Of a stretch of 64,000 nucleotides of DNA, positions 1,596-53,543 are shown piece after piece. Positions within the stretch are counted from its first letter, which is position 1. The number at the start of each line of letters is the position of its first letter. Origin of the DNA: Macrostomum lignano. Its lineage: Eukaryota. The notes beneath the pieces were generated by a model. It was given only the letters and a program-made list of their open reading frames with translations, did no database searches and was not told where the DNA came from. The translations under genes and the position numbers were made by a program. Location: positions 558,001-622,000 of the forward strand of contig NIVC01000284.1 of NCBI GenBank assembly GCA_002269645.1. Reading direction: 5' to 3'.

Positions 1596-1677
1596 TGTTA
1601 AAAGACGAGACTACATGTATGTTAGACCAATAAGCAGGGAAAGCTTAGCCGCGAGAAATGTTACACAAAGAACTCAC

Positions 1678-2002: not shown

Positions 2003-2632
2003 TTTTTTCCTTCTAAAAACTTTTTTCACTTTTTTGTCTCAGCTTTTACAGGTAGATATTTAATATAGACCGAGCACGCTTGAGCACATGGTCTTTATCG
2101 AGTTAGTTATCTTATCAAATTGTCATTTTCGTCGTTTAACTTTTATAGACATTGCGCTCTAGAAAGACTTAGCAAAAAAGAAGTTCAGTGATACGAGAAG
2201 TTGCTAAGACTAGCAACGACGCCCTCCACAGTAAAACTCCTGTTGATGTCATCGAAAGAACGGAAACTTAAAACTGCTTTTCCTAAAAATTTAAAACCAA
2301 GCTAAAAAAAGCTGTAATTGATTATTGTAAAAACTTGATTGCCACAATTAAAAAGCCTTATACTTAGCCATATGCTTTGCTAAAAAGGGTAATATTATTT
2401 TACTTAGGTAGATAAATAAAGCATACATATAGTAGCAACACTAAATCTACAAGATACTGTAGTACAAAAAGAAAACAAATACTAAAACTACAAAACAGCA
2501 GCATTTTATTAGCAATTGTCTGAGCTGTTACAAAACAACTAGTAATTTAGAAAACATTTAAGCAGACATGATTTTGAGCACACAGTGTTGTAAAGTACAG
2601 AATCTTGAAAGGTTATAAAGAGATTTTATCAA

Positions 2633-4021
2633 TTGGCGATTGTATAGATCTGAGCAGCTTCCTATCCAGATTGTGTATAGATCTGAGCAGCTTCCTATCC
2701 AGATTGTGTATAGATCTGAGCAGCTTCCTATCCAGATTGTGTATAGATCTGAGCAGCTTCCTATCCAGATTGTGTATAGATCTGAGCAGCTTCCTATCCA
2801 GATTGTGTATAGATCTGAGCAGCTTCCTATCCAGATTGTGTATAGATCTGAGCAGCTTCCTATCCAGATTGTGTATAGATCTGAGCAGTTTCCTATCCAG
2901 ATTGTGTATAGATCTGAGCAGTTTCCTATCCAGATTGTGTATAGATCTGAGCAGCTTCCTATCCAGATTGTGTATAGATCTGAGCAGTTTCCTATCCAGA
3001 TTGTGTATAGATCTGAGCAGTTTCCTATCCAGATTGTGTATAGATCTGAGCAGCTTCCTATCCAGATTGTGTATAGATCTGAGCAGTTTACTATCCAGAT
3101 TGTGTATCGATCTGAGCAGCTTCCTATCCAGATTGTGTATAGATCTGAGCAGCTTCCTATCCAGATTGTGTATAGATCTGAGCAGTTTCCTATCCAGATT
3201 GTGTATAGATCTGAGCAGCTTCCTATCCAGATTGTGTATAGATCTGAGCAGTTTACTATCCAGATTGTGTATAGATCTGATCCAGATTGTGTATAGATCT
3301 GAGCAGTTTACTATCCAGATTGTGTATAGATCTGATCCAGATTGTGTATAGATCTGAGCAGTTTACTATCCAGATTGTGTATAGATCTGAGCAGTCTCCT
3401 ATCCAGATTGTGTATAGATCTGAGCAGTTTCCTATCCAGATTGTGTATAGATCTGAGCAGTTTCCTATCCAGATTGTGTATAGATCTGAGCAGCTTCCTA
3501 TCCAGATTGTGTATAGATCTGAGCAGTTTCCTATCCAGATTGTGTATAGATCTGAGCAGTTTCCTATCCAGATTGTGTATAGATCTGAGCAGTTTCCTAT
3601 CCAGATTGTGTATAGATCTGAGCAGTTTCCTATCCAGATTGTGTATAGATCTGATCCAGATTGTGTATAGATCTGAGCAGTCTCCTATCCAGATTGTGTA
3701 TAGATCTGAGCAGTTTCCTATCCAGATTGTGTATAGATCTGAGCAGCTTCCTATCCAGATTGTGTATAGATTTGAGCAGTTTCCTATCCAGATTGTGTAT
3801 AGATCTGAGCAGTTTCCTATCCAGATTGTGTATAGATCTGATCCAGATTGTGTATAGATCTGAGCAGTTTCCTATCCAGATTGTGTATAGATCTGAGCAG
3901 TTTCCTATCCAGATTGTGTATAGATTTGAGCAGTCTCCTATCCAGATTGTGTATAGATCTGAGCAGTTTACTATCCAGATTGTGTATAGATCTGAGCAGC
4001 TTCCTATCCAGATTGTGTATA
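2633..4021. repeat. Minisatellite, 33-bp unit, about 42 copies with occasional 22-bp short units
   Basis: ttgtgtatagatctgagcag(c/t)ttcctatccaga tandem array. It explains the IQIVYRSEQLP and LCIDLSSFLSR ORFs. Confidence 0.97.
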
Positions 4022-4484
4022 GAATATACACAACTGGTAGCATTAAATCATAAAAAGTTTGAAAAGGCACACAAAAGCTAACGGTAAGCATAAGATAGCA
4101 GTGACTAGATTGCCTTGAAAAGAAAAAAATTAGACATGAAAATTTAAAATATTAAAAATGGTTATTAGCAGGTGTGAATAAAAATTTTAGCAACAAAATT
4201 CTTCGCATAATACTGTTTTGAGCAGTGAAATTGAAGCATTCTCGCAAAAAACGACAATAAATAGCTGAGCATGCAAAATAAATAATCAGACGATTTAATT
4301 TTTCAAAAATGTTTTAAAAAGCTTTAAACAAAAAACATATATAAAAGTTTGACAAATTTTCTTTGTTTAGCATGCTTTGAGTGTAAATTATATTTAACAA
4401 TCACATTTGAATCAACTATTGACTAGAAACAATAAATAGACAATTGTAAATATAGAATTTGAAAGGCCCGCTATTGAAATTACT

Positions 4485-5222
4485 GAAGAGTGACTTTCTG
4501 AAGTATTTGAGTAACGTTTTGTAGGATTTGAGAGTGAATTTCTGTAGGGTTAGAGTGACTTTCTGTAGGGTTTGAGAGTGACTTTCTGTAAGGTTTGAGA
4601 GTGACTTTCTGTAGGGTTTGAGAGTGACTTTCTGTATGGTTTGAGAGTGACTTTCTAGGGTTTGAGAGTGACTTTCTGTAGGGTTTAAGAGTGACTTTCT
4701 GTAGGGTTTGAAAGTGACTTTCTAGGGTTTAAAAGTGACTTTCTATAGGGTTTGAAAGTGACTTTCTAGGGTTTGAGAGTGACTTTCTGTAGGGTTTGAG
4801 AGTGACTTTCTGTAGGGTTTGAGAGTGACTTTCTGTAGGGTTAGAGAGTAACTTTCTGTAGGGTTTGAAAGTGACTTTCTGTAGGGTTAGAGAGTAACTT
4901 TCTGTAGGGTTTGAGAGTGACTTTCTGTAGGGTTAGAGAGTAACTTTCTGTAGGGTTTGAGAGTGACTTTCTAGGGTTTGAGAGTGACTTTCTAAAGAAC
5001 TCCGGAGTGAATTTCTGTAGGGTTTGAGAGTTACTTTCTATAGGGTTTGAGTGACTTTCTGAAAGACTCAAGAGTGAATTTCTGTAGGGTTTGAGAGTGA
5101 CTTTTTAGGGTTTGAGAGTGACTTTCTATAGGGTTTGAGTGACTTTCTGAAAGACTCGAGAGTGACTTTCTGTAGGGTTTGAGAGTGACTTTCTGTAGGG
5201 TTTGAGAGCTACTTTCTGTAGA
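4485..5222. repeat. Minisatellite, about 23-bp unit containing telomere-like TAGGGTT
   Basis: Consensus gagtgactttctgtagggtttga. Confidence 0.92.
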
Positions 5223-5372
5223 ATTTGAAGGGATTAGAGAACTGTTTGTTATAAAAAAGCAAAGCATTTTCGACCTAATTCAATTAATAAGGAAGTTATC
5301 GTTCGTTCCATTGATCGATTAGAGAAAATAAACAGAACACAAAACTCCTAGTGCACAAAAAGAACCCAGACA

Positions 5373-8300
5373 TCAGAGCAGTCGCAAATTTGTTACCAGC
5401 ATCGAATTAAAATCGGTTAGACGTTGATAATCTCCCGGCTCGCTAGCTTGTCCGAAATATTCGCTAAATGATTTTGCATCTCCGGCAGCTGCAGGTTCAC
5501 ATTCCGGTCTAGGCTCGCTCAGCCGATGAGAAGGTCGGTGCTGCTGTTTCTGCTGTTGCACAGTCGGGGGCGGCTGCAGCAGCAGCGGACAAGGAAGCAG
5601 TTCAGGTATAACTGACAGGTGACAGATTAGTGAGTGCAGATTCGGCCACTCTTTGGATAGACCTTTGAGCTTGACGCCTCTGGCTGTGCACTGGATCAGG
5701 TAGTGAGACAGTGCCTGCTGCTTCTGATGAGGCACGCACACCTGGTGGTTGAAGGGTTGCAGGGTGTTCAAGGTGAATTTCTTTCAAAGCAGTGGTTTGT
5801 TTGCATTTGCATTTCTTTGGGTACAATATTAGTCACATCGATTTTCTATTGAGTGACAAGGGCGATTTTCTGGGAGTGACTGGGGCGATTTTCTGTGAGT
5901 GACTGGGGCGATTTTCCGGGAGTGACTGGGGCGATTTTCTGTGAGTGACAGGGGCGATTTTCTGTGAGTGACTGGGGCGATTTTCTGGGATTGACAAGGG
6001 CGATTTTCTGTGAGTGACAGGGGCGATTTTCTGTGAGTGACAGGGGCGATTTTCTGTGAGTGACTGGGGCGATTTTCTGGGATTGACAAGGGCGATTTTC
6101 TAGGAGTGACAGGGGCGATTTTCTGAGAGTGACAGACGCGATTTTCTGTTTGTGTGACAGGGGCGATTTTCTGGGAGTGACAGACGCGATTTTCTAGGAG
6201 TGACTGGGCGATTTTCTAGGAGTGACAGGGGCGATTTTCTGGGGGTGACTGGGGCGATCTTTTAAGAGTGAAAGGGCGATTTTCTGCTGAGTGACAGGGG
6301 TGATTTTCTCGGAGTGACAAGGGCGATTTTCCGAGAGTGACAGGGCGATTTTTTTGGGAGTGACAGGGGCGATTTTCTGTGAGTGACAGGGGCGATTTTC
6401 TGTGAGTGACTGGGGCGATTTTCTGGGATTGACAGGGGCGATTTTCTAGGAGTGACAAGGGCGATTTTCCGAGAGTGACAAGGGCGATTTTCCGAGAGTG
6501 ACAGGGCGATTTTTTGGGAGTGACAGGGGCGATTTTCTGGGAGTGACAGGGGCGATTCTCTGTGAGTGACTGGGGCGATTTTCTGGGATTGACAGGGGTG
6601 ATTTTCTCGGAGTGACAAGGGCGATTTTCCGAGAGTGACAGGGCGATTTTTTTGGGAGTGAAAGGGGCGATTTTCTGTGAGTGACAGGGGCGATTTTCTG
6701 TGAGTGACTGGGGCGATTTTCTGGGATTGACAGGGGCGATTTTCTATGGGGTGACAGGGGTGATTTTCTAGGAGTGACTGGGCGATTTTCTAGGAGTGAC
6801 AGGGGCGATTTTCTGGGGGTGACAGGGGTGATTTTCTAGGAGTGACGGCGATTTTCTAGGAGTGACGGGCGATTTTCTGGGGGTGACAGGGGCGATCTTC
6901 TAAGAGTGACAGGGCAATTTTCTGTTGAGTGACAGGGGTGATTTTCTGGGAGTGACAGAGGCGATTTTCCGAGAGTGACAGGGGCGATTTTCTGTTTTTG
7001 TGACAGGGAGGATTTTCTGTTGAGTGACAGGGGCGATTTTCTGTTTGTGTGACAGGGGCGATTTTCTGTTTGTGTGACAGGGGCGATTTTCCGGGAGTGA
7101 CAGGGGCGATTTTCTGTGAGTGACAGGGCGATTTTCTAGGAATGGCAGGGGCGATTTTCTGCGAGTGAAATGCAAAATTCCCTAGTGATAGAGGGAGCGA
7201 TTTTCAGTGCGCGATGAGGAATGAATCTCGTAGGGCCGAGTAAAGTCAATCTAATAGAGTTGATCGAAGAGTGAATATCAAAGGTAAATTAAAACTAGCA
7301 AAGTACAAATAACTTGTAATACGAACCGAAAGTGCGTAGCAGTTCGGGTGACTGGCACTGTTGCGCACTAAGAAGCTTCCCACTGGTCTGCCAGCCAACA
7401 GCTTATAAGCCGCCTCCCTTGGCAACTCGGGTTGATACCACCACCAGCTCTGGCCGCTGCCGCTGTCCGATTCCATCTCATCGCTTAGGCTCTGAGGCTC
7501 GGCTTGTCGCTGATCTACCGTTTCAGCCTTCGGGATGGCATCTGGAGGCAGTGGCGGCGGCGGTGGCACCTCGAACTCGCAAGGTCGGCACTGAAGACTG
7601 TCGTAGTTGCATTGGTGAGACATCAGGGGGTGGGAGTTATGGTTCAGGTGCAGTTGACAGGCTGGGCCAGCAACTGATGGTCTGGGAGTCTGGCCCAGCA
7701 ACTGAGGATCTGGGAGGCTGGGTCCAGCAACTGAGGATCTGGGAGGCTGGGCCCAGCAGCTGAGGATTTGGGAGGCTGGCCCAGCAACTGAGGATTTGGG
7801 AGGCTGGCCCAGAAACTGATGGTCTGGGAGTCTTGCTCAGCAGCTGAGGATTTGGGAGGCTGGCCCAGCAACTGAGGATCTGGGAGTCTGGCCCAGCAAA
7901 TGAGGATGAAGGAGGTTGGTGGCCCAGCAACTTGGGATCCGGGAGGCTGGCCCAGAAACTGATGGTCTGGGAGTCTGGCCTAGAAACTGAGGATCCGGGA
8001 GAGTGGCCCAGTAACTGAGGATCTGGGAGTCTGGCTCAACAACTGAGGATCTGGGAGAGTGGCCCAGTAACTGAGGATATGGGAGTCTGGCTCAGCAACT
8101 GAGGATCTGGGAGGTTGGTGGCCCAGCAACTTGGGATCCGGGAGGCTGGCCCAGAAACTGAGGATCCGGGAGAGTGGCCCAGTAACTGAGGATCTGGGAG
8201 TCTGGCTCAACAACTGAGGAAGTGAGAGTCTGGCTCAGCAGCTGAGGATCTGGGACGCTGGCTCAGCAACTGAGGATCTGGGAGGCTGGTGGCCCAGCAA

Positions 8301-10194
8301 CTGGATGATCTGAGAGGCTGGTGGCCCAGCAACTGGATGATCTGAGAGGCTGGTGGACCAGCAACTGAGGATCTGAGAGGCTGGTGGCCCAGCAACTGAT
8401 GATCTGAGAGGCTGGTGGCCCAGCAACTGGATGATCTGAGAGGCTGGTGGACCAGCAACTGAGGATCTGAGAGGCTGGTGGCCCAGCAACTGATGATCTG
8501 GGAGGCTGGTGGACCAGCAACTGAGGATCTGGGAGGCTGGTGGCCCAGCAACTGGATGATCTGGGAGTCTGGCTCAGCCTATAAAGCAAAGAAAAATCAA
8601 CAGACAGCAGTTGCTACCGAGTTGGCAGTGGCGGAGGCTGCTGCTGCTGAGCGCTGTGCACCGATCTGCCAGCTACAGGACTGGCAACATAGCTGTTGCT
8701 GCTGACCTGCCCGCCGCCGATAGACCTTGGCGCGGGAATCGGCTTGGGCTTGACAACGTACTGCGAAGGCTGCTCAATGCTCTGCTGCTGTTGCTGCTTT
8801 TGCAAATGCTTCTGCTTTTGGCGATGCGGCTTTCTTGCAGCTGAAAAATGAATGATGAAGTCCAGCAGAAGTCCGACAACCTGACAACCATAATTTCTTA
8901 TTCTTCAGACACCAATCAGAAAATCAATAGGACATTATGTACTTTTATCCTGGCACAGGGCCGTAGCTCAGCGGCCCAGGCTCGATTCCAAGTGCTGTCA
9001 GATTAATTTGTAGCTCAACTGGAATCTCGGCTTGGCTCTGCTCGTGCTTTAAAAAGCCACTGAAAGCCAACCCCCTAAGGCACAGTGAAGTGTACATGAC
9101 TAACGATAAATAAAGTTAAGGCCGCTGTACACTCCTGTGTGAGTGTGTGCCTGTGCGTATGACTGCGTACGCATCCGCGCGCTTGTGTGCCTGCTCAGGG
9201 GAATCGGCGGAATGGGCAGTAATGCCTCTCACCGGTTGTGTGTCAATGTCGCTTAAAGTGCGCCAGGTGCACACAGGCCCTTTACATCTAATAAACATGT
9301 ACTTTTATTTATTAAGACACTTGCACTTTTATTGATGATACCCAATAAAAGAACCTTAATAGGACACAGTGTACTGGAAACGTATGCACTTTAACTGACA
9401 CAATGTTTCAGAACCATGTACTCTTAGTTAAAAACCGATCAGACTCTCTAATACTCATATACTTTAAGTCACCAAGCATCCCAGGCACTAGATAGAACAC
9501 TGTGTACTTTATTCAGGCACCAATCTAATACACTTAATCGAACACTATGCACTTTTATTCGAGAAACAAAGGAAATACACCTAATATGAGAAGCATGTAC
9601 AGTTATTAAGACGAAAATCGGATATCCGACCAAACACAATATGTACTTTAACTTATACAAAAATCTAGGACACAATGTACTTTTTAAGCATAACCCAACG
9701 CTTTTGAGTTTACCTTCAGCCGCAGACTCAGACTTAAACTTCTCTTTTTCAGCCACCAGCAGAGCGTGTTCAAAGCAGGCCCCAATTAGACTACTCAGTT
9801 CACGAGCAGCTCGAGGCGACTCAGTGGCGAACACTCGACACAGGGCAGGCGTGGACCGGCCACCCCCGGCCGCCTCTCTGGCCGAGAAGGCAAACAAAGA
9901 CCGATCCGGATCGCAGCTGGCCATCGAGATTCGTCTCAGTGGGTGCGTGGATAGCAACTGATCCGCACTGGTACTCAGATTTGATGTCGAATAAATACCG
10001 ATTCCTAAATATGATATTCTTAGCTGAACTGGTTGTCCATCAGAAGCGGCTGGTAGGCTGGTAGGCAGCTGAACTGAACTGCCTGTAGTAACAGGAAATG
10101 TTGCCACGTGTCTAACATAGCGAACAGAATCTGCAGTGCGAAGCTGTTGCTGTTCACAGCTGTCAGGTATCAAACAGTCTCGATTGCGGCGCAT
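5373..10194 (-). CDS. PTB + SH2 adaptor protein (SH2D5-like; SH2 resembles tensin/EGFRAP type), 4 exons, about 475 aa
   Basis: Exon model 10194-9714, 8840-8618, 7681-7327, 5741-5373 keeps frame (1428 nt). PTB: HVATFPV...HPLRRISMASCDPDRSLFAFSARE...LCRVFAT. SH2: WYQPELPREAAYKLLAGRPVGSFLVRNS...YALS|VCVP...HYLIQ...EWPNLHSLICHL...LLPCPL. The exon 2 donor and exon 3 acceptor are the least certain boundaries. Confidence 0.8.
5848..7175. repeat. Intronic minisatellite, about 23-bp unit
   Basis: Consensus gagtgacaggggcgattttctgt; fills most of intron 3 of the PTB-SH2 gene. Confidence 0.93.
7660..8578. repeat. Intronic G-rich minisatellite, about 28-31-bp unit
   Basis: tgggaggctg(gt)gcccagcaactgaggatc array filling intron 2 of the PTB-SH2 gene. 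Confidence 0.92.
8958..9285 (+). mobile_element. tRNA-derived SINE, family 2, copy 1
   Basis: A-box-like TAGCTCAGCGG and B-box-like GGCTCGATTCC. Body aligns by eye with the reverse complement of 52590-52860 (gccaacccc..aaggcaca, ctgtacactc.tgtgtgag, gcggaa.gggcag). Confidence 0.6.
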
Positions 10195-25955: not shown

Positions 25956-26798
25956 NNNNNNNNNNNNNNNNNNNNNNNNNNNNNNNNNNNNNNNNNNNNN
26001 NNNNNNNNNNNNNNNNNNNNNNNNNNNNNNNNNNNNNNNNNNNNNNNNNNNNNNNNNNNNNNNNNNNNNNNNNNNNNNNNNNNNNNNNNNNNNNNNNNNN
26101 NNNNNNNNNNNNNNNNNNNNNNNNNNNNNNNNNNNNNNNNNNNNNNNNNNNNNNNNNNNNNNNNNNNNNNNNNNNNNNNNNNNNNNNNNNNNNNNNNNNN
26201 NNNNNNNNNNNNNNNNNNNNNNNNNNNNNNNNNNNNNNNNNNNNNNNNNNNNNNNNNNNNNNNNNNNNNNNNNNNNNNNNNNNNNNNNNNNNNNNNNNNN
26301 NNNNNNNNNNNNNNNNNNNNNNNNNNNNNNNNNNNNNNNNNNNNNNNNNNNNNNNNNNNNNNNNNNNNNNNNNNNNNNNNNNNNNNNNNNNNNNNNNNNN
26401 NNNNNNNNNNNNNNNNNNNNNNNNNNNNNNNNNNNNNNNNNNNNNNNNNNNNNNNNNNNNNNNNNNNNNNNNNNNNNNNNNNNNNNNNNNNNNNNNNNNN
26501 NNNNNNNNNNNNNNNNNNNNNNNNNNNNNNNNNNNNNNNNNNNNNNNNNNNNNNNNNNNNNNNNNNNNNNNNNNNNNNNNNNNNNNNNNNNNNNNNNNNN
26601 NNNNNNNNNNNNNNNNNNNNNNNNNNNNNNNNNNNNNNNNNNNNNNNNNNNNNNNNNNNNNNNNNNNNNNNNNNNNNNNNNNNNNNNNNNNNNNNNNNNN
26701 NNNNNNNNNNNNNNNNNNNNNNNNNNNNNNNNNNNNNNNNNNNNNNNNNNNNNNNNNNNNNNNNNNNNNNNNNNNNNNNNNNNNNNNNNNNNNNNNNN
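25956..26798. other. Assembly gap (843 N)
   Basis: Run of N. Confidence 1.
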
Positions 26799-28489: not shown

Positions 28490-30336
28490 CTACTTATTGA
28501 GTGACAGCTTGTCAAGGACGAGTCGAAGTTCGTCGCCATCCAGGGTAACGCGTTTCTCAGAGATTATGGTCTCGATTTGGTGCCTGCAGAATTCCCTGTG
28601 TTCCAACGACTGGCTGTAGTGGGCCAGGGTAAGAAGCTCCTCTAAATCCGGGTCTTCTTGCAGTTCACACGCCACTCTCAAAAATGTCGATTGGAAGATC
28701 TCGTAGAAGCTCAGCTTGGAGACTCCAGCTGAGGCAGCGAAAATTCACGTACAGGTGGGCGGAGCCAGGCTGCGACAGTCTGGCTTTCAACAGAGTCTGA
28801 GTGAACTCAGGGAGGAACGGCAGTCGAGGCGGACTGTCGCAGGGGAGGCAAAACCTCCACGCCCAGTCTTCCTCAATATCGAAAAAGTCTTTACTCAGAA
28901 GGTTTTCAGGCTTCCAACCTCTCTGCACTTGATGCGATTGCAGCTTCTTCAGGAGGATGTCAGCCTGTGCAGAATCCTTGGATTTCACATACGCCATGAC
29001 TTTCATGCACAAGACTGCGCATTTACACCACTGAAGCTGATCCAGGATATTAAGCTGTTCCATTAGCTCGTCCTTGTCAGTTGCTTCTGACTGCAGATCA
29101 ACCATGCATTGGTTCACCATGCAGTAGACCGCAATGGATGAATCTGCAGGTTGTGTGGCTTGAAAAGGTTTTTCTACTTTTCTGGTTAGAGGTAGCAAAG
29201 TGAACGGGTGAAAGTAGAAGTCCTCCGACTGTAGAGACATCATCTGTTCTTTCATTGCCTCATACACCTGTCTTATATTGCTTCTAATCTCTCTGAATTG
29301 GTCCGAAACTTTTGTCCTTGCGTTGACTAAGTCACCTCCGACTCCAGCATTTTTGAAGTACAACGGAGCGTCAGCATGAAGAATGCAGACACAGGCGAGC
29401 TGCCGGAAGCAACGAAGCTTAGCATCGTGTCGAGCGATTCATTTAGCAGATCGACCAAGTTCTCCACCGAATGCCAAACTATCTTTGCCTTGCTTCTCCA
29501 GCATGAACAGGAGCAAAGTCTTGCGTAGGTCTTGAGACCTGCCGTGTTTGCAAATTGATGGGCATGTATATCTTAAATATGTATTTCAAGATGACGAAAA
29601 GTTGGCCTTGTACTTCGCTTACGCTCTCCAAGATTCTTTTTCATGGAAGCTGAAACTCACTCTGAGTTCGTTCGGCGAGTTGGTCGAGTCGCTCTAACGA
29701 GGTGCACTGGGGGCAGATCTCGGTTAGGAAGAAGCTTTGCAATTCGGTCCTGACAGAAGTCGCTGCAACATTGGATAGCTTCGCAGATGTCTTCTGTGGG
29801 TCGAACACCGCTCGCTGGGGTCGTCATCGCCGGCTGGCTGCCTGAAAAGAGACAACAACAGTTTATACCTTAGTCGAATTGTTGCCAGGGCTCAGTTAGT
29901 ACTTTAAATCAGTCTTTGATCTTCGTTGCGGCTTGACTATTAAAGTTGTAAGGTTTAACAGAGCACAAGCAAGCGTTACTGATAAGCTGGGCAAAACTTA
30001 CCCGATCCAGCTTGCACCTGAGCGTGGCCTTCTCTAACCTGAAGCAGTGGAGAATTTTTGCAATTTTCAGACCTTTGGCAGCCTCCTTTCAGGTGAGTTA
30101 CTTGTCTAGAGTCCATCGTAGTCCAGTCGATGTCGGATTGAGCCCCTACTCTGCCGTTCACCTGCACGAGACTGTTCCCCCAGCCTTCTCGGTAGCTGCC
30201 AGTCATCTGCCTCTGACCATCTGAAGAGCTTTGAACCAGCGTTTGCAGAGTGCGACCCAGTACTTGCTGACACTTTGCCCTGCGCAGACTGAATCCTGCC
30301 TGGGTAAGCTGCTGGTGCCAACTCCGACTTAGCTCT
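28490..30336 (-). CDS. cGAS-like/Mab-21 family nucleotidyltransferase (cGLR-like), frameshifted: sequencing errors or young pseudogene
   Basis: Exon 30336-30002: MTGSYREGWGNSLVQVNGRVGAQSDIDWT (GS + DhD NTase motif), donor G|gtaag. Exon from 29841: EDICEAI...NELRVSFSFHEKRIL...QLFVILKYIFK...GLKTY/KTLLLFMLE...NLVDLLNESL..FFM/DAPLYFKN, the Mab-21 core succession. About six indels. First exon not located. Confidence 0.75.
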
Positions 30337-30824
30337 CTGTTTCTAAATTTGTTAAAGCTAAATATTCAGTAACACATACGATCGTATTTAAAAAAACAGA
30401 AGCAAAATTTTCTTAGAAACATGCTCTCAATAGTAGATTGTGTCTATGGTTTTGGCACCAGGACAATGCATTTAGACAACCTCCGAATCGCTTACCGAGT
30501 TTGTTTGACGCAAAAAATCCATTGTCGTGTTTTCCGAAGTTCTAAAAGCACAAAATTAATTTTAAAACACTTAAATTCGTTTTTGTACATGGAAGACATT
30601 GTAAGAAGGAGGATGAGTGAAACTCAAAAAATTTCCTGAATTTCATTGGGGCCAATTTTCGTTGCAAGCATGTTAGCTATGGTTGCTTGTCTAAACGGAT
30701 TTCGCAAGGATTTTGCTCTTGCATTGCATACATTAAATAGAGCTTTACCATAGACAAACTTGGTCGAGAGAAACAACATTACCAGAACAAAACCGGCCTC
30801 CAGTGAAATTTTCACGACTTGTTA

Positions 30825-31755
30825 CATCTTTTTGCATTCAATTTCAACCAAAGTCGCATTCAATTTCAGCAAGCTGGCATTCAAAATCGGCAATCTAAAT
30901 TAGCCATCTAAATCTTCATTCAATTTAAGCATGCTCGCATTCCATATCAGCGAACCACATTCAGCGAACTGCATTCAATTCAATTTTGCCTCAAACTTGT
31001 CTGCTCGTCTATGGGTAAACTTTATTGACGCGTGCAGATTTTGCGCTCAATTTCGGCAATCTGCATTCAAATTCAGCAAAATTTTATTAACTTAACGTAA
31101 AACAAAACGAACGTCGTCCAATACATGTACAGTGTCATAGGGAACAAAAACAGAAAATCGAAGTCACGTCAAGTGTGCTTCAGTCCCCATTGGTGTTCAT
31201 GAGCTCTGCAAGTTGTAAATAGTCCTGCCCTGTCTCGTGGGCATCGATAAGGCGGGCTCTATCTCCGTCAGAAACTCGTGCGTATGGTCCTCGACCGTCT
31301 TCTTCTTCTCACTCAATTTCTTCGACAGCTTGTTCTTTGATGATCTCATTGTCACTCATATCTATGTTCGATATCTACACTTGCAGTCAAAAAAAAACAG
31401 AAAGCTGGGGTGAAGTGAAATGAAAGGATCGACAGAGCCTCTTTGGATGTAAACTGTACATGGAATTGAACATTCGTCTGTGGTTGAAATCGAATGTGTT
31501 TTGCTGAATTTGAATGCAGATTGCCGAAATTGAGCGCAAAATCTGCACGCGTCAATAAAGTTTACCCATAGACGAGCAGACAAGTTTGAGAAAAAATTGA
31601 ATTGAATGCAGTTCGCTGAATGTGGTTCGCTGATATGGAATGCGAGCATGCTTAAATTGAATGAAGATTTAGATGGCTAATTTAGATTGCCGATTTTGAA
31701 TGCCAGCTTGATGAAATTGAATGCGACTTTGGTTGAAATTGAATGCAAAAAGGTG
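30825..31755 (-). mobile_element. Tc1/mariner-like deletion derivative with 257-bp TIRs and TA TSD
   Basis: TIRs 30825-31081 and 31499-31755, about 4 mismatches seen. TA at 30823-24 and 31756-57. Interior encodes RGPYARVSDGDRARLIDAHETGQDYLQLAELM, an HTH-like transposase N-terminus. Confidence 0.85.
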
Positions 31756-31817
31756 TAGTGTCCTTTCGTAGTCTCTGAATTTGCATTGATATTCAGAAAA
31801 AAAGAAATTTATATTGA

Positions 31818-33579
31818 TTAAAAGACGCACCCATTTTGCAGCACCGGAAGCACTTGGTAGTTATGATATTGATTAGCCAGCTGCTCGCATGTCATGCCTT
31901 GGTGATCTTGATGACTTGGGTCTGCTCCTTCGTTTATCAGAACCTTGGCAGATAAAACATGGCCCGCTATGCACGCTCGAGACAGAGCCGTCCGACCTTG
32001 GCCATCTACAGCCCTCACAGACGCACCGTGAAGCAGCAATTCATTGATGACGTCGTGCTGACCCGCATCTGCTGCCAGCATTAAAGCGGTTGCTCCTGTG
32101 CTATTCTGCTGATCGACATGCGTGTCGCTATAGTATTGGCTTCTGATTATCGTGAGTGCCAGTGCGACAAGACTGTGCGTGATGGACAGGCAGAGCAGTT
32201 GAGCGATGCGAACGGCATGCATTTTAGACAGCGTATATCGTAAAACTGAATCGTCACCAGGAATCTCCAGGTGCTGAGAGAGCAGCTTCAGCAGTGGAGA
32301 GTTGCGGAGCAGCCAGTCAGCTGGAATGGCTGCCACCGCTTTTCCGTCCGAGCTTGAGGAATAAAATCGGAACTGACCCGACTCCGGCTTTTGAAGCAGT
32401 GGACACAAGAAACTCGTTGAGTCTGCGGATATCCATCTTTTCTGCAACAGTCTCCGTCGCGGACCTCCAGTACTCGTCTTTCAGCAACATGCTGGAAGGA
32501 ATATACTTGCCGACAGTCGCGACAACATCCCAGTTTTTCGTATCTGCTGCAGCCCCTGCAGTTATCATGCAGCTACTTTCGAGAATGCTTTGATCGTCAA
32601 TGATCTCAATGAAAGTTTTCACTTCATTCCATTCGTTTCTGTCTGCAAGGATTTCTACTGCTTTCAGGCAGCACTGATCCCTCATGTTTTTGTCTTCAAT
32701 GGTTAGAGCCAGAAAAACCAGATCTTCGCACTGAGCAGATGAATGTGCTAAGTCTGCAAGCTTCATGCAGCACAGATACCTGCGACTGGGGTCAGCGATC
32801 AGCTCAACTAGAGACTTCGCGATATCCCAACTGCCAGATAATACAAAGGATTCAGCAAAATCGATGCATTTTTTATCTCTAAGTGCTGGATTAGAAATAT
32901 TTCTTAAAAGCGAAGTAGCTGCTTCCAAGCAATTGGATGCAGCAGATTGCTCTGCATAGGAGATGCAGAAAGAATCCCGGCCGTCCGAATCAGAAATCAT
33001 CTGCCCAAGAGAGGCCACACAGTTCATATTGCCATGGCTGGACGCAGATTCTGCAGCGTCTATGCAGTATTGATCTTTGAGTTGCCTATCGCGAATTGTA
33101 CCTGCTAGAAAAATAATGAGTTCATCGTTAAAAAGATCGTTATTTGCAAGTGCAGGAGCGTCTTCAAAAGTTTCGTCTGTTGTGCCAGCGTTTTCCGAAA
33201 CGGCCTTTATGTAAGATGAACAGAAGTCATCTCGCAGTTGTTCGTCAGAGATGCTTTGCACCAAAAAAGTCACAACATTCCAGTGCTGATTTCCTGCAGC
33301 GATCCAGGCTGCTTCCGCACAACAACTATCTTTACTGCTTTTGTCGAAAAAGAATTCCATCAGAGCAGCGACAACTTCTCCGTGGCCATTGGCTGCTGCA
33401 GCTTTTGTCGCCTCCGTGCAACACTTGTCCGAGCTGTCTCTGTCCGAAATCTTTTGCAAATATTTTTCCAGATCTTCTCTTGTACCACTGGCGGCGGCTT
33501 TGACTGCATTTTCTGCTGCATTCTTCTCCAAAATATCTTCTATTTTGCTTTCCAGGAAGTTTCGAGCACGATTGAACAT
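31818..33579 (-). CDS. Intronless protein: ten 35-aa helical repeats plus C-terminal ankyrin repeats, about 586 aa, one apparent +1 frameshift near 32410
   Basis: ORFs 32317-33693 and 31818-32447 overlap and join as NEFL/CPLLQK if one T is removed. Ankyrins: STGATALMLAADAGQHDVINELLLHGA, GQGRTALSRACIAGHVLSAKVLINEGADP. Likely ATG at 33579. Confidence 0.75.
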
Positions 33580-34307
33580 AATTATATGCGTGAAAAACTC
33601 ACTTGACGCAGTTTTCTTAATTGGCAAGGTATTTCGTTGAAACCATTTATTTGCTGTGAATTCGAAGATTATCGTTTGTAATGCTTTAAACACTTACAGA
33701 CTCGCTGTGCTTCGAGGGGGGTTGACAGAATGATAAGTTAAGGCTTAGGGCATAAAATCCAGACCAGCTAGCTATCGGAAACAAAATTCCAGCAGTCTTA
33801 GTTAAAATAATAGTTATATATATCGGCCAATCTTTTGCCCCTCCCCTCTCTCCACCAGTCTGCCACATGTAGTTAACTGGTGAGAGTTAGTGGAACCCGA
33901 CTGCAGGAAATTCCGTGGAAATTCCATGGCTAGTTCAACTACTGGAGAGATCGGTGGCTATGTTAAAGATAGTAGTGCCAGGGGTGATCAGGTGTCGCCT
34001 ACTGAGAAAAAGAGAGATAAAGTTTGGGGCACGGACGGACAGGTAGAGGGGTGCACAGGTGGCAGTCCCAATTGCCTAACATTTACAAGCCTAGCCTCCA
34101 CTTGAGCACTCATATATGAGGGAAACTATAGGTTTATGCAACTATAGGTTTATGCAAATACGTACTTGGAAGGTAGAAATCGATCGATCAGCGCATAGAA
34201 CGAATAAAATAGTGGTGCTGCGGGTCCCTAAGTTAGACACAATCTGCTGCGTGGCACTGCAGGAAAAAAGCATTGCGGGTGTTGTGTCGTGACAAGGGAG
34301 CCCTTGA

Positions 34308-36271: not shown

Positions 36272-37729
36272 TTAAGCAGTCAACCTTCTATCTACGACCT
36301 CTAGGAGCACCAGAGGCGCCAGCACCAGAGGCGCCAGCACCAGAGGCGCCAGCACCAGAGGCGCCAGCACCAGAGGCGCCAGCACCAGAGGCGCCAGCAC
36401 CAGAGGCGCCAGCACCAGAGGCGCCAGCACCAGAGGCGCCAGCACCAGAGGCGCCAGCACCAGAGGCGCCAGCACCAGAGGCGCCAGCACCAGAGGCGCC
36501 AGCACCAGAGGCGCCAGCACCAGAGGCGCCAGCACCAGAGGCGCCAGCACCAGAGGCGCCAGCACCAGAGGCGCCAGCACCAGAGGCGCCAGCACCAGAG
36601 GCGCCAGCACCAGAGGCGCCAGCACCAGAGGCGCCAGCACCAGAGGCGCCAGCACCAGAGGCGCCAGCACCAGAGGCGCCAGCACCAGAGGCGCCAGCAC
36701 CAGAGGCGCCAGCACCAGAGGCGCCAGCACCAGAGGCGCCAGCACCAGAGGCGCCAGCACCAGAGGCGCCAGCACCAGAGGCGCCAGCACCAGAGGCGCC
36801 AGCACCAGAGGCGCCAGCACCAGAGGCGCCAGCACCAGAGGCGCCAGCACCAGAGGCGCCAGCACCAGAGGCGCCAGCACCAGAGGCGCCAGCACCAGAG
36901 GCGCCAGCACCAGAGGCGCCAGCACCAGAGGCGCCAGCACCAGAGGCGCCAGCACCAGAGGCGCCAGCACCAGAGGCGCCAGCACCTGCAGAATATTTAG
37001 AGAATGGCACTCACGTGTGTCAGCGCACTGCATTCAATGTACTTGAGAGCTTTAGTCTTCTTAGCCAACTTTTTTCCCTGCTTGAAGGTGACCGGCGCCC
37101 TTCCATTCTTTGCCAGTTTCTCAACCACATCCGGGTCTGTCCTCAAATCTGCCTTGGTGCCAATCAGGACGAATGGAGTACTGCTATTGTAGATGTAACT
37201 CGGAGCCTCTCGCAACCACTTGGTTTCCACATTTTCAAATGACGCCGGGTCGATCACCGAGAAGCAGATCAGGTAGCCGTCGTAGCTGGGATACGCGGGA
37301 GGACGCAATCTGAAGTGGAAAGTAGAAAGTATGCAAAGCAAGATGAATTATCATGCAGTGTACAGTCTGATGTACAGCCAAAGACATCGATGAGTGTTGC
37401 TGAACTGGCAGCTAACTTATAGTCTATGGCCAGCCCTGCGGACCGCTATAAGTGGATTTCTTTCAGGCTTTTAATAATAAGAGGTTTTAAAGTTATATTT
37501 TAGCTGATCAGTTGCACTCGATTTACCTGTCGTATTCCAGTGGCACCGGCAAGTCAATTAATTGCAGAATGAAGTCCTCTGTACCAATTTTTCCTGTGAT
37601 TTCCTTGGGGTCGCACGTATTCGGCACGTACTCCGATGGAAACTGGCTGGTTGCAGAAGTTATGATCAGACTGGTTTTTCCAACGCCCTTGTCGCCGACC
37701 ACAGAGCATTTACACGTAAAACATTGCAT
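36272..37729 (-). CDS. Atypical Rho-family GTPase (Rac/Cdc42-like fold)
   Basis: Exon 37729-37527 (KCSVVGDKGVGKTSL..FPSEYVPN..LQLIDLPVPLEYDR) and exon 37309-37015 (LRP..YLICFSVIDPASFENVETKW..FVLIGTKADLR..KYIECSALT) have canonical splice sites. Possible last exon 36985-36272 after a 29-nt intron; otherwise stop at 36997. Confidence 0.8.
36307..36986. repeat. Perfect 15-bp tandem repeat, about 45 copies
   Basis: (gcgccagcaccagag)n. Minus strand reads (VLAPL)n or (GAGAS)n. Confidence 0.97.
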
Positions 37730-40618: not shown

Positions 40619-42099
40619 TCAAGGTGTATCCTCGACCAGGCACTCGACAGTTTGCATGGAGTAGTCCATGTCGAGCGGGGTCGTGGAGCCGTCGTAGAAA
40701 TAGTACAGAGGTGAGTAGCTGGAGTCGAAGCCCGGCGGAAACGGAGGCGCATAGTAGATTCCGTTGGGGTTGAAGGAGTTGCAGTAGCCGTACCACCAGC
40801 CAGCCGAGCGCAGGGAGGCGCAGTTCACTGCAGCCACGTCATTGTCCTGATCAGGAGTGGAGAACTGAAAGTTGTGGATATTCCACATAGAGCCGCGGTT
40901 GTACTGGGGCACGCTGGACCTGCTGGCATCGAGTGGCCCGATCCTGACTCGGTAATTGTCGGCTGAGCCAGCTACCGTGAAGTTGGGATTCTCCGTCCAG
41001 TACCAGTTGCCGTCCCAGTCGCCGAACTCAAACCGGAGTCGCCGAGTGCCGTCCAGAGTCAGAAGGTGCAGCGGCTGCAGGCCCATCCAGAAGTTGGCGT
41101 GCTCGGTCTGGCCGAAGCCGCTGACGTACGCGGCCCAGTTGCGGTTGAAGCTCAGCGAGCCGTCAACCCTGTGCTGGAAGGTTCTCCAGCAAGTGACGCG
41201 ACTCTGAGATGCTCGAATCTGCGTTAGATGATAAAGCGAACGGATTCGACAGTAAGATGGCTCGAATGACCAGCTAAAGTCCAGGTGAGATATTGCCTCC
41301 TTTTACTTTAGTTTTCCATGCAGTAAAAAATCCTAACTTCGAATGCTTCCAAGAATCAAATGAAGTCAATGTGCAAACTCGAGATTAAAATCGGACTGTC
41401 CAATGAGTTCTCTTCGATTGAAACTTTTGCGTCCTGGACCTGATGCTACAGTGGTCCTTAATTTTTTTAATAGAGCGAAATTTGTTCATTGGAATAGCAG
41501 TTGTAGCCCCCGTTGGGGAGACAACAAAGAAAAAAATACCCAAAAAGCTCCTTATTAAAAAACGTAATGCTATGCTTACTTTCTTAGAAATTAAATGTGC
41601 AAAAAGCAGGAAAGAAATAGGTCTGATATCAAGAATTATCAACTTTGAGCCTTGATATCTCAGCTAGAATTGCTCGCTAAGTCTCTAATTAATATTATCA
41701 TGTTTTGTTTCGGTATCTCAAAGAAAAGGCAGCTGGAGTGTGCTTGTTCATCTCATCATCAAGTTTTTGAAGGCGAGAACTGGAAACTCGGTGAGTCGAA
41801 CTCACCCAGACGGACGGCGGCAGGTCCGGTTGATTGAAATGCCGACATTTCTGACAGCCCAGCCGGCCCTTCGGGCAGCTCATGAGGCTGCACAGCCCCG
41901 TCTGCTCAGCGAACAGCACGGCGTCGGTGTCGGCAGTGGCAGCAGTCAGGCACTCGATGAGCTTACTGCTGGGGAAAACTTGCAGAGTTCGGTACTCAGT
42001 CAGGTTGAGCTGCACTCGCCGCCAGATTGCGCTGCCGGCAGCATTGAGACGATGAGCTGTCACGCCAAGAAGCAGGGAGATCAGAAGCAAGTGGCGCAT
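40619..42099 (-). CDS. Secreted lectin-like protein: signal peptide + PAN/apple-like region + fibrinogen C-terminal (FReD) domain, about 292 aa
   Basis: Exon 42099-41806 (MRHLLLISLLLGVTA...; donor TGG|gtgagt) and exon 41203-40619 (TFQHRVDGSLSFNRNWAAYVSGFG..FWMGL..LHLLT..FSTPDQDND..NCA..AGWWY..C..NPNG), both phase 0. Confidence 0.85.
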
Positions 42100-42296: not shown

Positions 42297-42581
<285 letters not shown>

Positions 42582-43189
42582 AAGTAGCAGATTGAAGTGT
42601 TCAATTACGCTAATCGACAGTCAATCAGTGACAATTGCTTGGGCCTACTGTTTGGGAAATTTTTAAATTAAGCAATGCCTACTGAGGACACTGCGGGTAC
42701 CCGCAAAACAAAATGGTCGTTTCAATTAAATATCCCAGCTTTGTTCATTTGGTGAAAGTCTTTTTTCATTTTTAAATTACAATTTTTCTGACGGCGTTCT
42801 ACAAGTAATCTGGTTCTGCTCTCGGTAGTCAGCTACGATGATTGTTTTAATTCCGTGTATGAAGGCATCATTCGCGATACACTGCTGTCAAAAATATTTA
42901 TCAAAAAGATGTTGCCGCCAAAAATTGATTATTTGGAATGGGGACTGCTTTTAAAGCTTGAAAATATTCAATGTAATTTTTTGTGGGCAGAGTCGTGATG
43001 GCGGAATCGAGTTTCTGTGCGCCAGTCCTTCCAGTATTGATTTCGGTGGGGTCGTTTTGCAATCCCGAAATTTTCATTTTTCGTCTTGTTAAGCTTCTTT
43101 TTGTTCAACCTACGCCCAGAAGGATCGTTTCCTTGAGTTTTAGGATTCATTTTGTATATTTTTATCTACAAAAAGCTCCGTGTAGATAA

Positions 43190-45349: not shown

Positions 45350-46102
45350 ATGCTCAACAGCCTTGTTCTACACTTCATGGTTGCCACGAGCACCATTGTC
45401 TTGCTTCTCTTTGCTGCTGAGGGCGGCAACTTGGCCCTGAAATTCACCAAGTCCAACAGTGACAGCGCTGTCGCTCCGCTGGATTTCGCTTCTCTGCCCG
45501 GACCCAACAAGATCAGCTGCGGCTTCATGTGCGGCCTCAGGCCGGGCTGCTTCGGCTTCTACTGGCTGCTCGGAGCGTATCGGCTGTTTGACATGCAGGC
45601 GTTTTACGATGCCAGCGCCTGGGTCAGCACCGGCAAGTGCGACGTCTTCGTAATAGGTAGGCTTCGTTTAAAATTCTGCTTGAATTGAAGTTTACCAAGT
45701 CTTCAAGATCTTATTGTATGTAACTAAGTTTAATCAGCCGATTTCAATTTTCATGCCTTTTCGACCCGAATCCAGCTTTGGAGAAGCTGCAGATTCTCGA
45801 CTGCGACCAGAGTTCGAGCTCAGGACAATGTCTTCCAGCGGGCCATTGACGGCAACACGAACTCGAGTTTGCATGCTGGTTCCTGCACTGGAAACAACAT
45901 GAATGAGTGGTGGGAGGCCGTCCTCGCCGCCCCGTCATTCGTGTCCTTCGTCACCATCCACAACAGGCAGGACTGGTGCTCTGACAGATTCAACACTTTC
46001 GATCTCCTCGTTGACGAGTCCGAATGCAAGCAGGTGAACGTCAGCGTGGCGTTCTCCGTGGCCAACTTCACCTGCGGCGCGTTCGGCGTTGCTTCCGTGT
46101 GA
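45350..46102 (+). pseudogene. PAN/apple + F-type lectin paralog, degenerate
   Basis: Exon 45350-45656, intron, exon from 45776. Same intron position as the 56943-57779 gene. Frameshift near 45830, apple Cys to Tyr, lectin His lost (CTGN versus CSHT), RQDWC versus RQDCC, C-terminal strands missing. Confidence 0.7.
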
Positions 46103-47344
46103 TGCCGCGGACATGCGATGATTTGATGAATTCGGTAATCCATCGAAGAGCAGATAATTCGTTAACAAAAACATTTGCTGCATTTTCGAGATTCATCAAG
46201 CAACACTGGCTGTACCGACACGTGGCTTAATTTAACTGAGAGCAATTTAATTAACTTAGAAGCACTGCGGACACCCTTTGGTCCGAACAGAAATAGTGTT
46301 AGAATTAAAACAGCCACTCTACAGTTTTTTGTTGCAAAAATTCAATTCACGAAATTGAATTTTTCATTTTTTACTAGCAAAAACTGCAATTTTGCTCCGA
46401 ATATATTTTTGCAGTGATTTTTCAAGAATGCGCCCGTAGAAACAATTAGACAGAAGTGGAAATTTGCTTCTGATGCATTTTTCTGAACCTTAGTGCCTTA
46501 AGGGCCTTGGTGCCCTAATGGGTTGGCCCTAATGGGTTGGCCCTAATGAATTTCATTTTTCGCTGTTCAATACTGTAATTATAGACTTCTGTTGTGGATG
46601 AGTCGTCCTGCATTTTTACCAAAGCCGAAAGACAGACCAGCGAGATGAAACAGTTTGTTAAAACAAATGTAAAACTGAATGTGACGCTGCTCAGATTCAG
46701 TCACTAAGTGTCAAAACCGAAATTTATTGAAGCTTACTTAAAGAGTAAGTTGATAGGTGGCTACTGTAAGTAATAAAAACAGAACTTCGAGTACTTCTTA
46801 GTGAGCTAGTAGAAAACAACTAATTGGGCTATCGGTGATTTGCATGCAGGTGAGCAAATTCTGTCAATTGAGAGAAACACAATTCTATTGCTTATTTAGA
46901 GGCTTAATTATGCCTGAAAAATTCCAACATATTTAAAGTATCAATCAATGGACTCTTAAGGCTCGTTCGAGCAGCTATCAAATGAGACCAATTTTCGGGC
47001 GATCAAACGTCCTGTTCAATTTTTTGATGGTTCAGCTGATGATGCCTTGCAAACTAGTACTTGGTGGTTTCTTGTATCAAGCCATTTTTCATCCTGGGAG
47101 CACAAAGAGGGGATATCCGGCGTTTTAAGATACCAATGACAGTCGACTTGGTCCAGAGCGTTACTCCGGGCTCCATTTTAAGGGGCGTAAGTTGACATCC
47201 TTGGCTGCGGCCGACAAACAACAGCATATTGTTGCACAATGTGACAGACTGTAGCATAAGAATCAATGTGTTGTTTTACAAGCAGTAGGCAACTTTGATC
47301 TACAGTACACAATATCCCGAAAAGGTATCTCGGCTACGCATAGT

Positions 47345-53543
<6,199 letters not shown>

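Follow-up and report, generated by a model that had tools for sequence, protein, structure and literature searches.

The minus strand of the window, the 64,000-nt stretch of the Macrostomum lignano genome analyzed here, carries between 28490 and 30336 only exons 2 and 3 of a larger gene, which we infer to run in three exons over roughly 5.1 kb, from about 33579 to 28490 (Table 1). The order predicted for its product is N-terminal ankyrin repeats, a nucleotidyltransferase (NTase) core of the cGAS/Mab-21 fold and a C-terminal domain of ~260 aa. An earlier note on this DNA had described the region as a "hidden" nucleotidyltransferase; with an ankyrin exon upstream on the same strand, it does not stand alone but forms the 3′ portion of a gene that joins ankyrin repeats to a cGLR. 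Exon 1 would open at the ATG of MFNRARNF and continue with ~450 aa of helical repeats that are ankyrin-like but degenerate and rich in Cys, followed at its 3′ end by canonical ankyrin repeats and a GT donor at 31830. It matches Pfam ankyrin models (Ank_2 at E 1.6e-4; Ank families down to E 4e-13), and the paralogue P0007 has a single continuous exon where it sits. When the N-terminal region was used as the query, only generic ankyrin proteins were returned, without an annotated model of the locus.

Splice phases are coherent in both introns. Paralogues have an intron in the same place as intron 1, for which either of two acceptors, at 30337 and 30343, restores the frame. Intron 2 is the gap that separates SDIDW from EDICEAI; it is a true GT..AG intron in the correct phase, and its position, between AG and SQPA, is kept in the paralogues. 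The inverted-repeat element within intron 1 is probably a non-autonomous DNA transposon. Exon 3 terminates at a TAG stop (28492-28490), and in intact paralogues the last exon is unbroken at about 1.4 kb. A scaffold gap of 843 nt of N (25956-26798) lies 1.7 kb downstream of the gene.

Table 1. Features of the ankyrin-repeat-cGLR locus and its frame breaks (positions in the window; break sizes in nt)
Feature	Position	Strand	Remarks
Exon 1 (putative)	31831..33579	-	ORFs 32317-33693 and 31818-32447; tblastn with P0007 and P0001
Canonical ankyrin-repeat block	31839..32270	-	One intact frame; 56% identity to P0001 residues 1-144
Intron 1 (putative)	30337..31830	-	Donor GTGCGT, phase 2
Inverted-repeat element, 935 bp, within intron 1	30823..31757	.	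259-nt terminal inverted repeats, 98% complementary
Exon 2	30002..30336	-	Single intact frame; spine helix (N-terminal), beta-1, MTGS, SDIDW
MTGSYREGWGNSL	30206-30168	-	First part is the MTGS motif, 30206-30195
SDIDW, first two catalytic Asp	30137-30123	-	D..D invariant in family
Intron 2, 160 nt	29842..30001	-	GTAAGT...TTTTCAG, phase 1
Exon 3 (last)	28490..29841	-	Rest of NTase core, Mab-21_C helical lobe, C-terminal domain
EDICEAI, third catalytic Asp on beta-strand	29774..29794	-	Corresponds to P0002 D148, cGAS D319
Break	~29681	-	-1
LRVSFSFHEK	29666-29637	-	
Break	~29634	-	-1; missed in the earlier note
VQGQLFVILKYIFK	29613-29572	-	
Break	~29549	-	+2
GLKTY	29539-29525	-	
Break	~29523	-	-4; takes out the nearly invariant His of conserved TYHAKT
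KTLLLFMLEK	29522-29493	-	
Break	~29480	-	Net +1
Break	~29373	-	-1, beside an in-frame -9 deleting part of conserved DECMPH
Intact 232-aa ORF	28665..29363	-	End of Mab-21 domain and most of C-terminal domain
Break	~28678 (28667..28688)	-	+1 or -2; between ...LPIDIF and ELQEDPDLEELL

The peptides on which the earlier note had built its case were all found in their places on the minus strand, no single ORF covering all of them. Its proposed active site, a GS motif, a DxD and a third acidic residue in EDICEAI, is intact in the window, and the corresponding G65/S66, D87/D89 and D148 (P0002 numbering) do not vary among 12 diverse members of the family, although identity between members is only ~30%. 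The window sequence, as MTGS-X20-DIDW-X56-EDI, fits the cGLR motif of Li et al. 2023 (PMC9980059), h[QT]GS-X8-20-[DE]h[DE]h-X50-90-h[DE]h; the residue preceding the third Asp is E/Q, not hydrophobic, and the strict regular expression matches through the adjacent C-E-A. The expected correspondence with the cGAS triad was also borne out at the level of sequence, the third Asp aligning with human cGAS D319 (the Asp of ISVDITLAL): hhalign paired RPAQD(148)TCHAI with KISVD(319)ITLAL (E 4e-4, probability 35%), and VHLVRATRP..ELRVSFS with cGAS FYLVPKHAK..TWRLSFS. An arrangement in which EDICEAI is helical and the His of VHLVRA replaces the third acid was rejected on the basis of this D148-D319 pairing, of the strand (149-155) that DSSP places directly after D148 in the P0002 model, and of the sequences MDLVPA and FDFVTA at the third-Asp position in distant members. 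About 27 residues separate D148 from H176 in P0002, whereas cGAS has a far longer insert from D319 to FYLVPK. The family also has an invariant Cys/His set, which may be a Zn site, and an unusually long GS-DxD loop of 20 residues, the top of the motif range of Li et al. Isoelectric points (8.4-8.7 for the core, compared with 9.07 for the cGAS core, and 5.0-5.6 for the C-terminal domain) are indecisive for nucleic-acid binding.

The stitched sequence of 569 aa has 34 protein matches, and the best of these (E 1.7e-185) is 55% identical over 97% of the query. Could the motif matches have arisen by chance, or from translated non-coding repeat DNA? Pfam searches with the single-frame pieces gave no meaningful matches, as such a reading would have it. 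Against it stand the homology (E 1e-185), which extends along the full stitched sequence, the introns, whose positions are conserved, and the ankyrin exon found upstream; with the homology and tblastn results we consider it refuted, with next to no probability left to it. Compared with the M. lignano paralogues, the window copy shows 50-59% amino-acid and 68-71% DNA identity, and the searched protein collections contain nothing above 59% identity to the locus. Ankyrin repeats, cGLR core and C-terminal domain lie on one strand together with the intron between AG and SQPA, the features of the subfamily; judged by sequence, the window copy is a divergent, outlier paralogue in the expanded ankyrin-repeat-cGLR family of M. 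lignano. The family is not an unrecognized one: UniProt labels members "Mab-21-like HhH/H2TH-like domain-containing," and Li et al. 2023 (PMC9980059) already catalogued the subfamily as cGLRs, the M. lignano paralogues PAA93208.1 (BOX15_Mlig001946g3) and PAA68676.1 (BOX15_Mlig016402g1) being nos. 92-93 of their Table S3. Some members, as currently modeled, also have a fused caspase domain (cGLR-ankyrin-caspase gene models P0184 and P0191).

Resemblance to a cGAS-like (cGLR/Mab-21-fold) nucleotidyltransferase, the central claim of the earlier note, is upheld by profile and fold matches as well as by homology. When searched as a whole protein against the PDB, the family profile was swamped by ankyrin-repeat matches and was set aside, and the core alone was used instead. 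Its best match is Sp-cGLR1 (8gjy) at E 1.4e-7, and all of its 41 PDB matches are cGLR/cGAS/MAB21L1 chains or the entries 4jlx and 4kb6 ("Uncharacterized protein"), bar one marginal SH3 domain (E 2.1). For the AlphaFold model (pLDDT 78.6, pTM 0.82) the intact paralogue P0002 was used in place of the broken window copy, and with it Foldseek returned cGAS, MAB21L1, MB21D2 and Sp-cGLR1 at the top with probability 1.0 and a target-normalized TM of about 0.5, which makes the paralogue a predicted structural homologue of cGAS. As modeled, the family has the cGAS/Mab-21 fold. The HMMER check for Mab-21 gave a divided answer: Pfam PF20266 (Mab-21_C; gathering score 24.1 bits) is found above threshold in intact paralogues (26.8-32.5 bits), but the stitched window protein stays under it (17.7 bits, E 0.004), and PF03281, the NTase lobe, is matched by neither the window sequence nor the paralogues, with E cut-offs relaxed to 1-10. 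The NTase lobe is recognized solely by profile and fold searches.

Breaks in the reading frame were mapped by frameshift-aware protein-to-DNA alignment and by aligning the DNA with that of two paralogues whose genes are intact. Exon 3 has seven frame disruptions where the paralogue exons are open, six of them within about 310 nt (29373..29681), and an eighth is probable in exon 1 at about 32375-32460. The earlier note had counted about six indels, each placed within ~10 nt of a real break, and was right that one exceeds 1 nt; its total for exon 3 was one short. Very short introns were considered as the source of the last-exon breaks, since M. lignano has 58-nt introns, and were rejected because the DNA alignment shows no extra sequence at the breaks. 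At the ~32400 junction in exon 1, removal of a 61-nt GT..AG interval would equally bring the frame back, and a short intron is possible there.

We consider that the window copy is probably a pseudogene, and a fairly young one, as its conserved residues otherwise survive and no nonsense substitution has arisen. This is the most likely reading because the neighboring nAChR gene reads cleanly and the locus has no annotated protein, neither M. lignano annotation set in the database having a model or protein for it; the mixed sizes of the breaks (Table 1), the loss of the nearly invariant His and the open last exon of intact paralogue genes were also counted towards it. The locus itself, then, probably makes no functional protein. 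Some observations run the other way: an old pseudogene would not be expected to keep its frame free of nonsense codons with its invariant residues in place, and every disruption could, in formal terms, be a 1-nt error added to a natural in-frame length difference. It is possible, although we think it doubtful, that the animal has an intact, working gene here, encoding a divergent ankyrin-cGLR of ~1,100-1,200 aa, and that the 7-8 breaks are consensus errors of a long-read assembly. All catalytic and nearly all family-invariant residues are kept without any in-frame nonsense codon, splice phases are coherent in both introns, most breaks fit the gain or loss of a single nucleotide (some beside short A or C runs), and their tight cluster, with the scaffold gap near, is what a locally poor consensus would leave. 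However, the ~2 kb of adjacent nAChR coding exons, 92-100% identical to M. lignano proteins, have no frame break; indels thus do not pervade the whole assembly, and a uniform error rate is disfavored. The 232-aa ORF, nearer the gap, is also clean, the break at 29523 is a loss of 4 nt that includes a conserved His codon and that at 29549 a gain of 2 nt, and both annotation sets lack a model. With a probable pseudogene as the preferred reading, the earlier description of a "catalytically competent-looking receptor" would hold for the intact relatives, to judge from their residues, and fails for the window locus, with its 7-8 frame disruptions, the loss of a near-invariant His and no annotated product.

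The C-terminal stretch of ~250 aa that had not been recognized proved to be real, conserved and lineage-restricted, and it is folded in the model (pLDDT 75.7, pTM 0.70) with no recognizable fold. The model shows TPR-like helices together with a small alpha/beta unit, in which the motifs DWAWRFCLPCDSPP and LYVNFRCLSWSLQAELL lie; a fold search against the PDB gave nothing below E 0.5, just matches to TPR-like hairpins of 60-80 residues. Among 1.84 billion, 24 representative clusters match the domain; the ten that were looked up were all from M. lignano (10/10), and one further match listed for the stitched sequence, P0021, comes from a JGI metagenome. As far as these searches go, the domain (~260 aa) is almost confined to Macrostomum. 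That this extension senses a ligand, as had been proposed, is speculation.

Among the closest known systems are the M. lignano ankyrin-cGLR paralogues, here P0001-P0020 and P0183. These paralogues and the window copy have in common the domain order, the intron position and the motifs MTGSYxEGWxNSL, SDIDW, QDTCHAIxCC, VHLVRATRP, ELRVSFSF, GQLFxxxKFIFK, GLKTY and DWAWRFCLPCDSPP. Unlike them, the window copy is unannotated, with no closer database relative, and has a transposon-like insert in intron 1 and frame disruptions, with the TYHAKT His and part of DECMPH gone. With Sp-cGLR1 of Stylophora pistillata (8gjy) and vertebrate cGAS (4k9b, 6cta), the family shares the bilobal Mab-21/cGAS nucleotidyltransferase fold together with the GS motif, [DE]x[DE], third Asp, (S)PAVT, WRxSFS and SYHxKT, at just 13-20% identity and with ankyrin repeats and the C-terminal domain in addition. 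Ankyrin-repeat-fused cGLRs are known, for example from corals, whose cGLRs may carry ankyrin or death domains (Li et al. 2023, PMC9980059, Fig. 1C). As in the M. lignano family, such proteins join an NTase core to ankyrin protein-interaction repeats; the likeness is one of domain fusion, and the M. lignano proteins have the extra C-terminal domain. MAB21L1/MAB21L2 (5eog, 5eom) have the same fold and comparable Foldseek scores over the C-terminal lobe, and Li et al. 2023 (PMC9980059) state that Mab21L1/2/3 have no active site predicted to function. The M. lignano family differs from MAB21L1/MAB21L2 in keeping an invariant GS/DxD/D set, and because the window has these residues too, the window sequence was not filed with the non-catalytic MAB21L1/2-type proteins.

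By analogy with other cGLRs, the intact relatives may sense a ligand, perhaps through their ankyrin and/or C-terminal domains, and in response begin to make a cyclic nucleotide messenger, which a downstream receptor would read. Five M. lignano cGLRs were cloned by Li et al. 2023 (PMC9980059; Table S3 nos. 89-93) for a biochemical screen, and two of the five belong to the very subfamily of the window copy; their Note entries are blank, and the 15 active enzymes include none of them. This inactivity is weak evidence because the screen used dsDNA and poly I:C only and constructs #92-93 start downstream of the ankyrin repeats. It does bear on an explanation that we consider unlikely, in which the family, and with it this copy before its decay, is a Mab-21-fold scaffold or adaptor rather than a cyclic-nucleotide synthase and keeps the acidic residues for the sake of structure or nucleotide binding, as has been suggested for MAB21L1. 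Consistent with such a role are the absence of a PF03281 match, MAB21L1 among the top structural matches, the long GS-DxD loop with the invariant Cys/His set, and the place of the M. lignano constructs outside the active set. Yet GS/DxD/D is invariant at ~30% identity, whereas Mab21L1/2/3 are said to lack a functional active site (Li et al.), and the best sequence-profile match, Sp-cGLR1, is an active cGLR; the limited ligands and ankyrin-less constructs weaken the screen result here as well. Quite improbable, in our estimate, is that the breaks are artefactual and the locus is a live divergent ankyrin-cGLR whose C-terminal domain is a new ligand-sensing or effector-coupling module, with a non-STING output possible, e.g., through fused caspase domains.

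Birth-and-death turnover is typical of immune receptor families. With this locus, a cGLR family known from an earlier catalogue and in part from a screen gains one more paralogue, probably a dead one, and a decaying copy would be evidence of such turnover and could help to date it. Macrostomum retains and has expanded its cGLRs; most flatworms are reported to be without any. Loss of cGAS and STING has been reported in the literature for Schistosoma and Schmidtea, and nothing was found there for Macrostomum. If the breaks are artefacts, signaling by the family would persist in a phylum from which cGAS-STING is elsewhere reported lost. The case also shows that frame-stitching by eye can bring out genuine NTase domains so divergent that they escape Pfam.

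On its minus strand the window holds a frameshifted copy of an ankyrin-cGLR (cGAS-like receptor) gene, which is probably an unannotated, dead paralogue in a family already catalogued. No single frame is open throughout 30336-28490, as the earlier note had stated, and the peptides it quoted were all recovered at their minus-strand positions when read across frames. A 569-aa sequence stitched by hand, each frame break marked by X, served as query for domain and homology searches; it matched Mab-21_C alone in Pfam and below threshold (17.7 bits, E 0.004), and had 34 relatives in a large protein collection, nearly all from the free-living flatworm Macrostomum lignano (best relative E 1.7e-185, 55% identity, 97% of query covered). 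Most of the 34 carry ankyrin repeats and many have a precomputed PF20266 (Mab-21_C) match. Mab-21_C scores of the intact paralogues exceed the Pfam gathering threshold, and none of these proteins matches the NTase-lobe model PF03281. Family members also occur on short JGI metagenome contigs (P0021, P0028) and in a 'Kangiellaceae bacterium' MAG (P0030), the last being most likely flatworm DNA contaminating the bin and not a bacterial homologue.

The suggested cGAS-like fold is supported by intact relatives. A profile of the core region of 12 diverse family members, searched against PDB sequences, matched the active coral enzyme Sp-cGLR1 best (8gjy, E 1.4e-7); its other matches were ~35 cGAS sequences, MAB21L1, 4jlx and 4kb6 (both 'Uncharacterized protein') and a marginal SH3 (E 2.1). 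The AlphaFold model of P0002, an intact 659-aa paralogue, is confident (pLDDT 78.6, pTM 0.82), with mouse and human cGAS, MAB21L1, MB21D2 and Sp-cGLR1 as best PDB fold matches (probability 1.0, target-normalised TM ~0.5). G65, S66, D87, D89 and D148 (P0002 numbering) are invariant among the 12 members and all have equivalents in the window copy, in agreement with the GS, DxD and third acid read from the sequence alone; the copy carries the active-site motif by which Li et al. 2023 (PMC9980059) defined cGLRs, as MTGS-X20-DIDW-X56-EDI. In the P0002 model, strand 89-101 starts at D87/D89 and strand 149-155 directly follows D148, a position reading MDLVPA or FDFVTA in distant members, the classic Mab-21 third-Asp strand. 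With hhalign against the human cGAS sequence from Table S3 of Li et al., GSQPAVT aligned to GSPAVT and D148 to the Asp of ISVDITLAL (D319). Because of the modelled strand, the distant-member motifs and the D148-D319 pairing, the guess that EDICEAI holds the third acid was right, and a helix at EDICEAI was rejected. Six more NTase-core residues, H100, C105, H123, C155, C156 and H176 of P0002, do not vary in the family alignment either; their counterparts in the window lie in exons 2-3, and they may form a metal (Zn) site distinct from the cGAS zinc thumb.

Searches by tblastn with intact paralogues placed the gene start upstream of 30336, where an intact ankyrin block is preceded by further ankyrin-like repeats as far as an ATG at 33579. 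Splice phases are mutually consistent across the inferred three-exon structure. An indel between SDIDW and EDICEAI was ruled out, the gap being intron 2, whose phase correctly joins ...QAGS-G-SQPAM... and whose position is the same in two intact paralogue genes from GCA_002269645.1. Intron 1 contains an inverted-repeat element, present once in the window and absent from the two paralogue loci, that probably represents a recent insertion of a non-autonomous DNA transposon; its core holds a short HTH-like ORF remnant lacking a Pfam match.

Features of the cGLR locus and its surroundings in the window
Feature	Position	Strand	Details
Exon 1 (inferred)	33579-31831	minus	
Intact ankyrin-repeat block	32270-31839	minus	56% identical to residues 1-144 of homologue P0001 (tblastn)
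Intron 1 (inferred)	31830-30337	minus	
Inverted-repeat element	30823-31757		935 bp; 259-nt terminal inverted repeats, 98% complementary; 417-nt core
Exon 2 (inferred)	30336-30002	minus	
Intron 2	30001-29842	minus	160 nt, GTAAGT...TTTTCAG
Exon 3 (inferred)	29841-28490	minus	
Frame break 1	~29681	minus	-1
Frame break 2	~29634	minus	-1
Frame break 3	~29549	minus	+2
Frame break 4	~29523	minus	-4; TAC CAT GCA AAG to TAC GC AAG, nearly invariant His lost
Frame break 5	~29480	minus	net +1, stretch of variable length
Frame break 6	~29373	minus	-1, beside in-frame 9-nt loss in conserved DECMPH
Frame break 7	~28678	minus	+1 or -2
Scaffold gap	25956-26798		843 N; 1.7 kb beyond cGLR gene 3' end
Nicotinic acetylcholine receptor (nAChR) gene	45482-53457	minus	multi-exon; Neur_chan LBD and membrane domains in homologues (Pfam)
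ORF fragments	40619-41086 and 9469-10194	minus	fibrinogen C-terminal domain (E 8e-18) and PTB/PID domain (E 2e-6)
Span with tandem arrays	1238-8578		
Tandem array	2641-4023		33-nt unit x43
Tandem arrays	4487-5228, 5839-7168		23-nt units x33 and x58
Tandem array	7662-8578		28-nt unit x31
Tandem array	36306-36986		perfect 15-nt unit x45
Tandem arrays	among 42297-42587, 48635-49100		(TAG)97 and (TAAC)116

Frameshift-aware protein-to-DNA alignment with three paralogues, together with DNA alignment to two intact paralogue genes, mapped seven disruptions in exon 3; all six indels reported earlier are among them, the break at ~29634 having been missed. An eighth probably lies at ~32375-32460, between two exon-1 ORFs, where the gene of paralogue P0007 is continuous; a 61-nt GT..AG interval could instead explain this junction. 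The mixed indel sizes and the loss of a conserved His make it reasonably likely that the window copy is a real pseudogene, as does the neighbouring nAChR gene, our control for assembly quality, which has no frame break and whose exons are each 92-100% identical to M. lignano P0035 and P0036. The last exons of the paralogues are open, and the best annotated protein is at most 59% identical to the locus (none above this value in homology searches and a HMMER scan covering 1.84 billion representative proteins), which points the same way. Assembly error is a rather doubtful source of the breaks, favoured by zero nonsense substitutions, the retention of nearly all invariant residues, the packing of six breaks into ~310 nt and the nearby scaffold gap; every break could also be accounted for by a 1-nt error on top of natural in-frame variation. 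Most likely, the window copy yields no functional protein.

The long unrecognised C-terminal extension described earlier is a real domain. The window's intact 232-aa ORF (29363-28665), modelled together with its homologues (pLDDT 75.7, pTM 0.70), gives a helical stretch, TPR-like in part, and after it a small alpha/beta unit, and a fold search of PDB structures returned nothing below E 0.5. Just 24 clusters in the exhaustive HMMER scan contain it at E <= 0.001; all ten that were looked up are M. lignano proteins, and one more listed match is P0021 on its environmental contig. Given this model, the lack of a PDB match and the 24 clusters, the domain is nearly restricted to Macrostomum and without recognisable fold. 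An M. lignano 'Ig-like domain-containing' model (P0027, UniProt A0A1I8GQH7) has an 82-residue stretch 65% identical to the window C-terminal domain and is probably a chimera, a piece of a different family member having been drawn into the gene prediction.

If they work as characterised cGLRs do, intact members would be inactive until a ligand is sensed, whereupon the GS loop, together with a metal-binding triad of D87, D89 and D148, would join NTPs into a cyclic oligonucleotide, to be read by a downstream receptor. The ankyrin repeats and the C-terminal domain, which is acidic (pI 5.0-5.6 versus 8.4-8.7 for the core), are candidates for binding ligand or partner. Five M. lignano proteins were cloned for the biochemical screen of Li et al. 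2023 (PMC9980059, Table S3), and nos. 92 (PAA93208.1) and 93 (PAA68676.1) belong to exactly the same subfamily as the window copy. Their Note fields, where labels mark the 15 active enzymes, are empty; the constructs as listed start after the ankyrin repeats, and poly I:C and dsDNA were the only ligands screened. Loss of cGAS and STING has been reported in other papers for Schistosoma and Schmidtea, and we found nothing in the literature on STING in Macrostomum. Two M. lignano models, P0184 (PAA59752.1) and P0191 (PAA93319.1), combine cGLR core, C-terminal domain and ankyrin repeats with a C-terminal caspase (Peptidase_C14, E 1e-25 to 1e-27); should each prove to be one genuine transcript, a cGLR would be fused directly to a protease effector, and a merging of adjacent genes is an equally good explanation.

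By the exon identities of the nAChR gene, the window belongs to M. lignano or a species very close to it. Elsewhere in the window, the segment around the scaffold gap (26-28 kb) is very low in GC (0.22). Several large tandem arrays account for long ORFs that are spurious and for the peaks of GC skew seen along the composition profile, and the fibrinogen C-terminal and PTB/PID ORF fragments are other genes.
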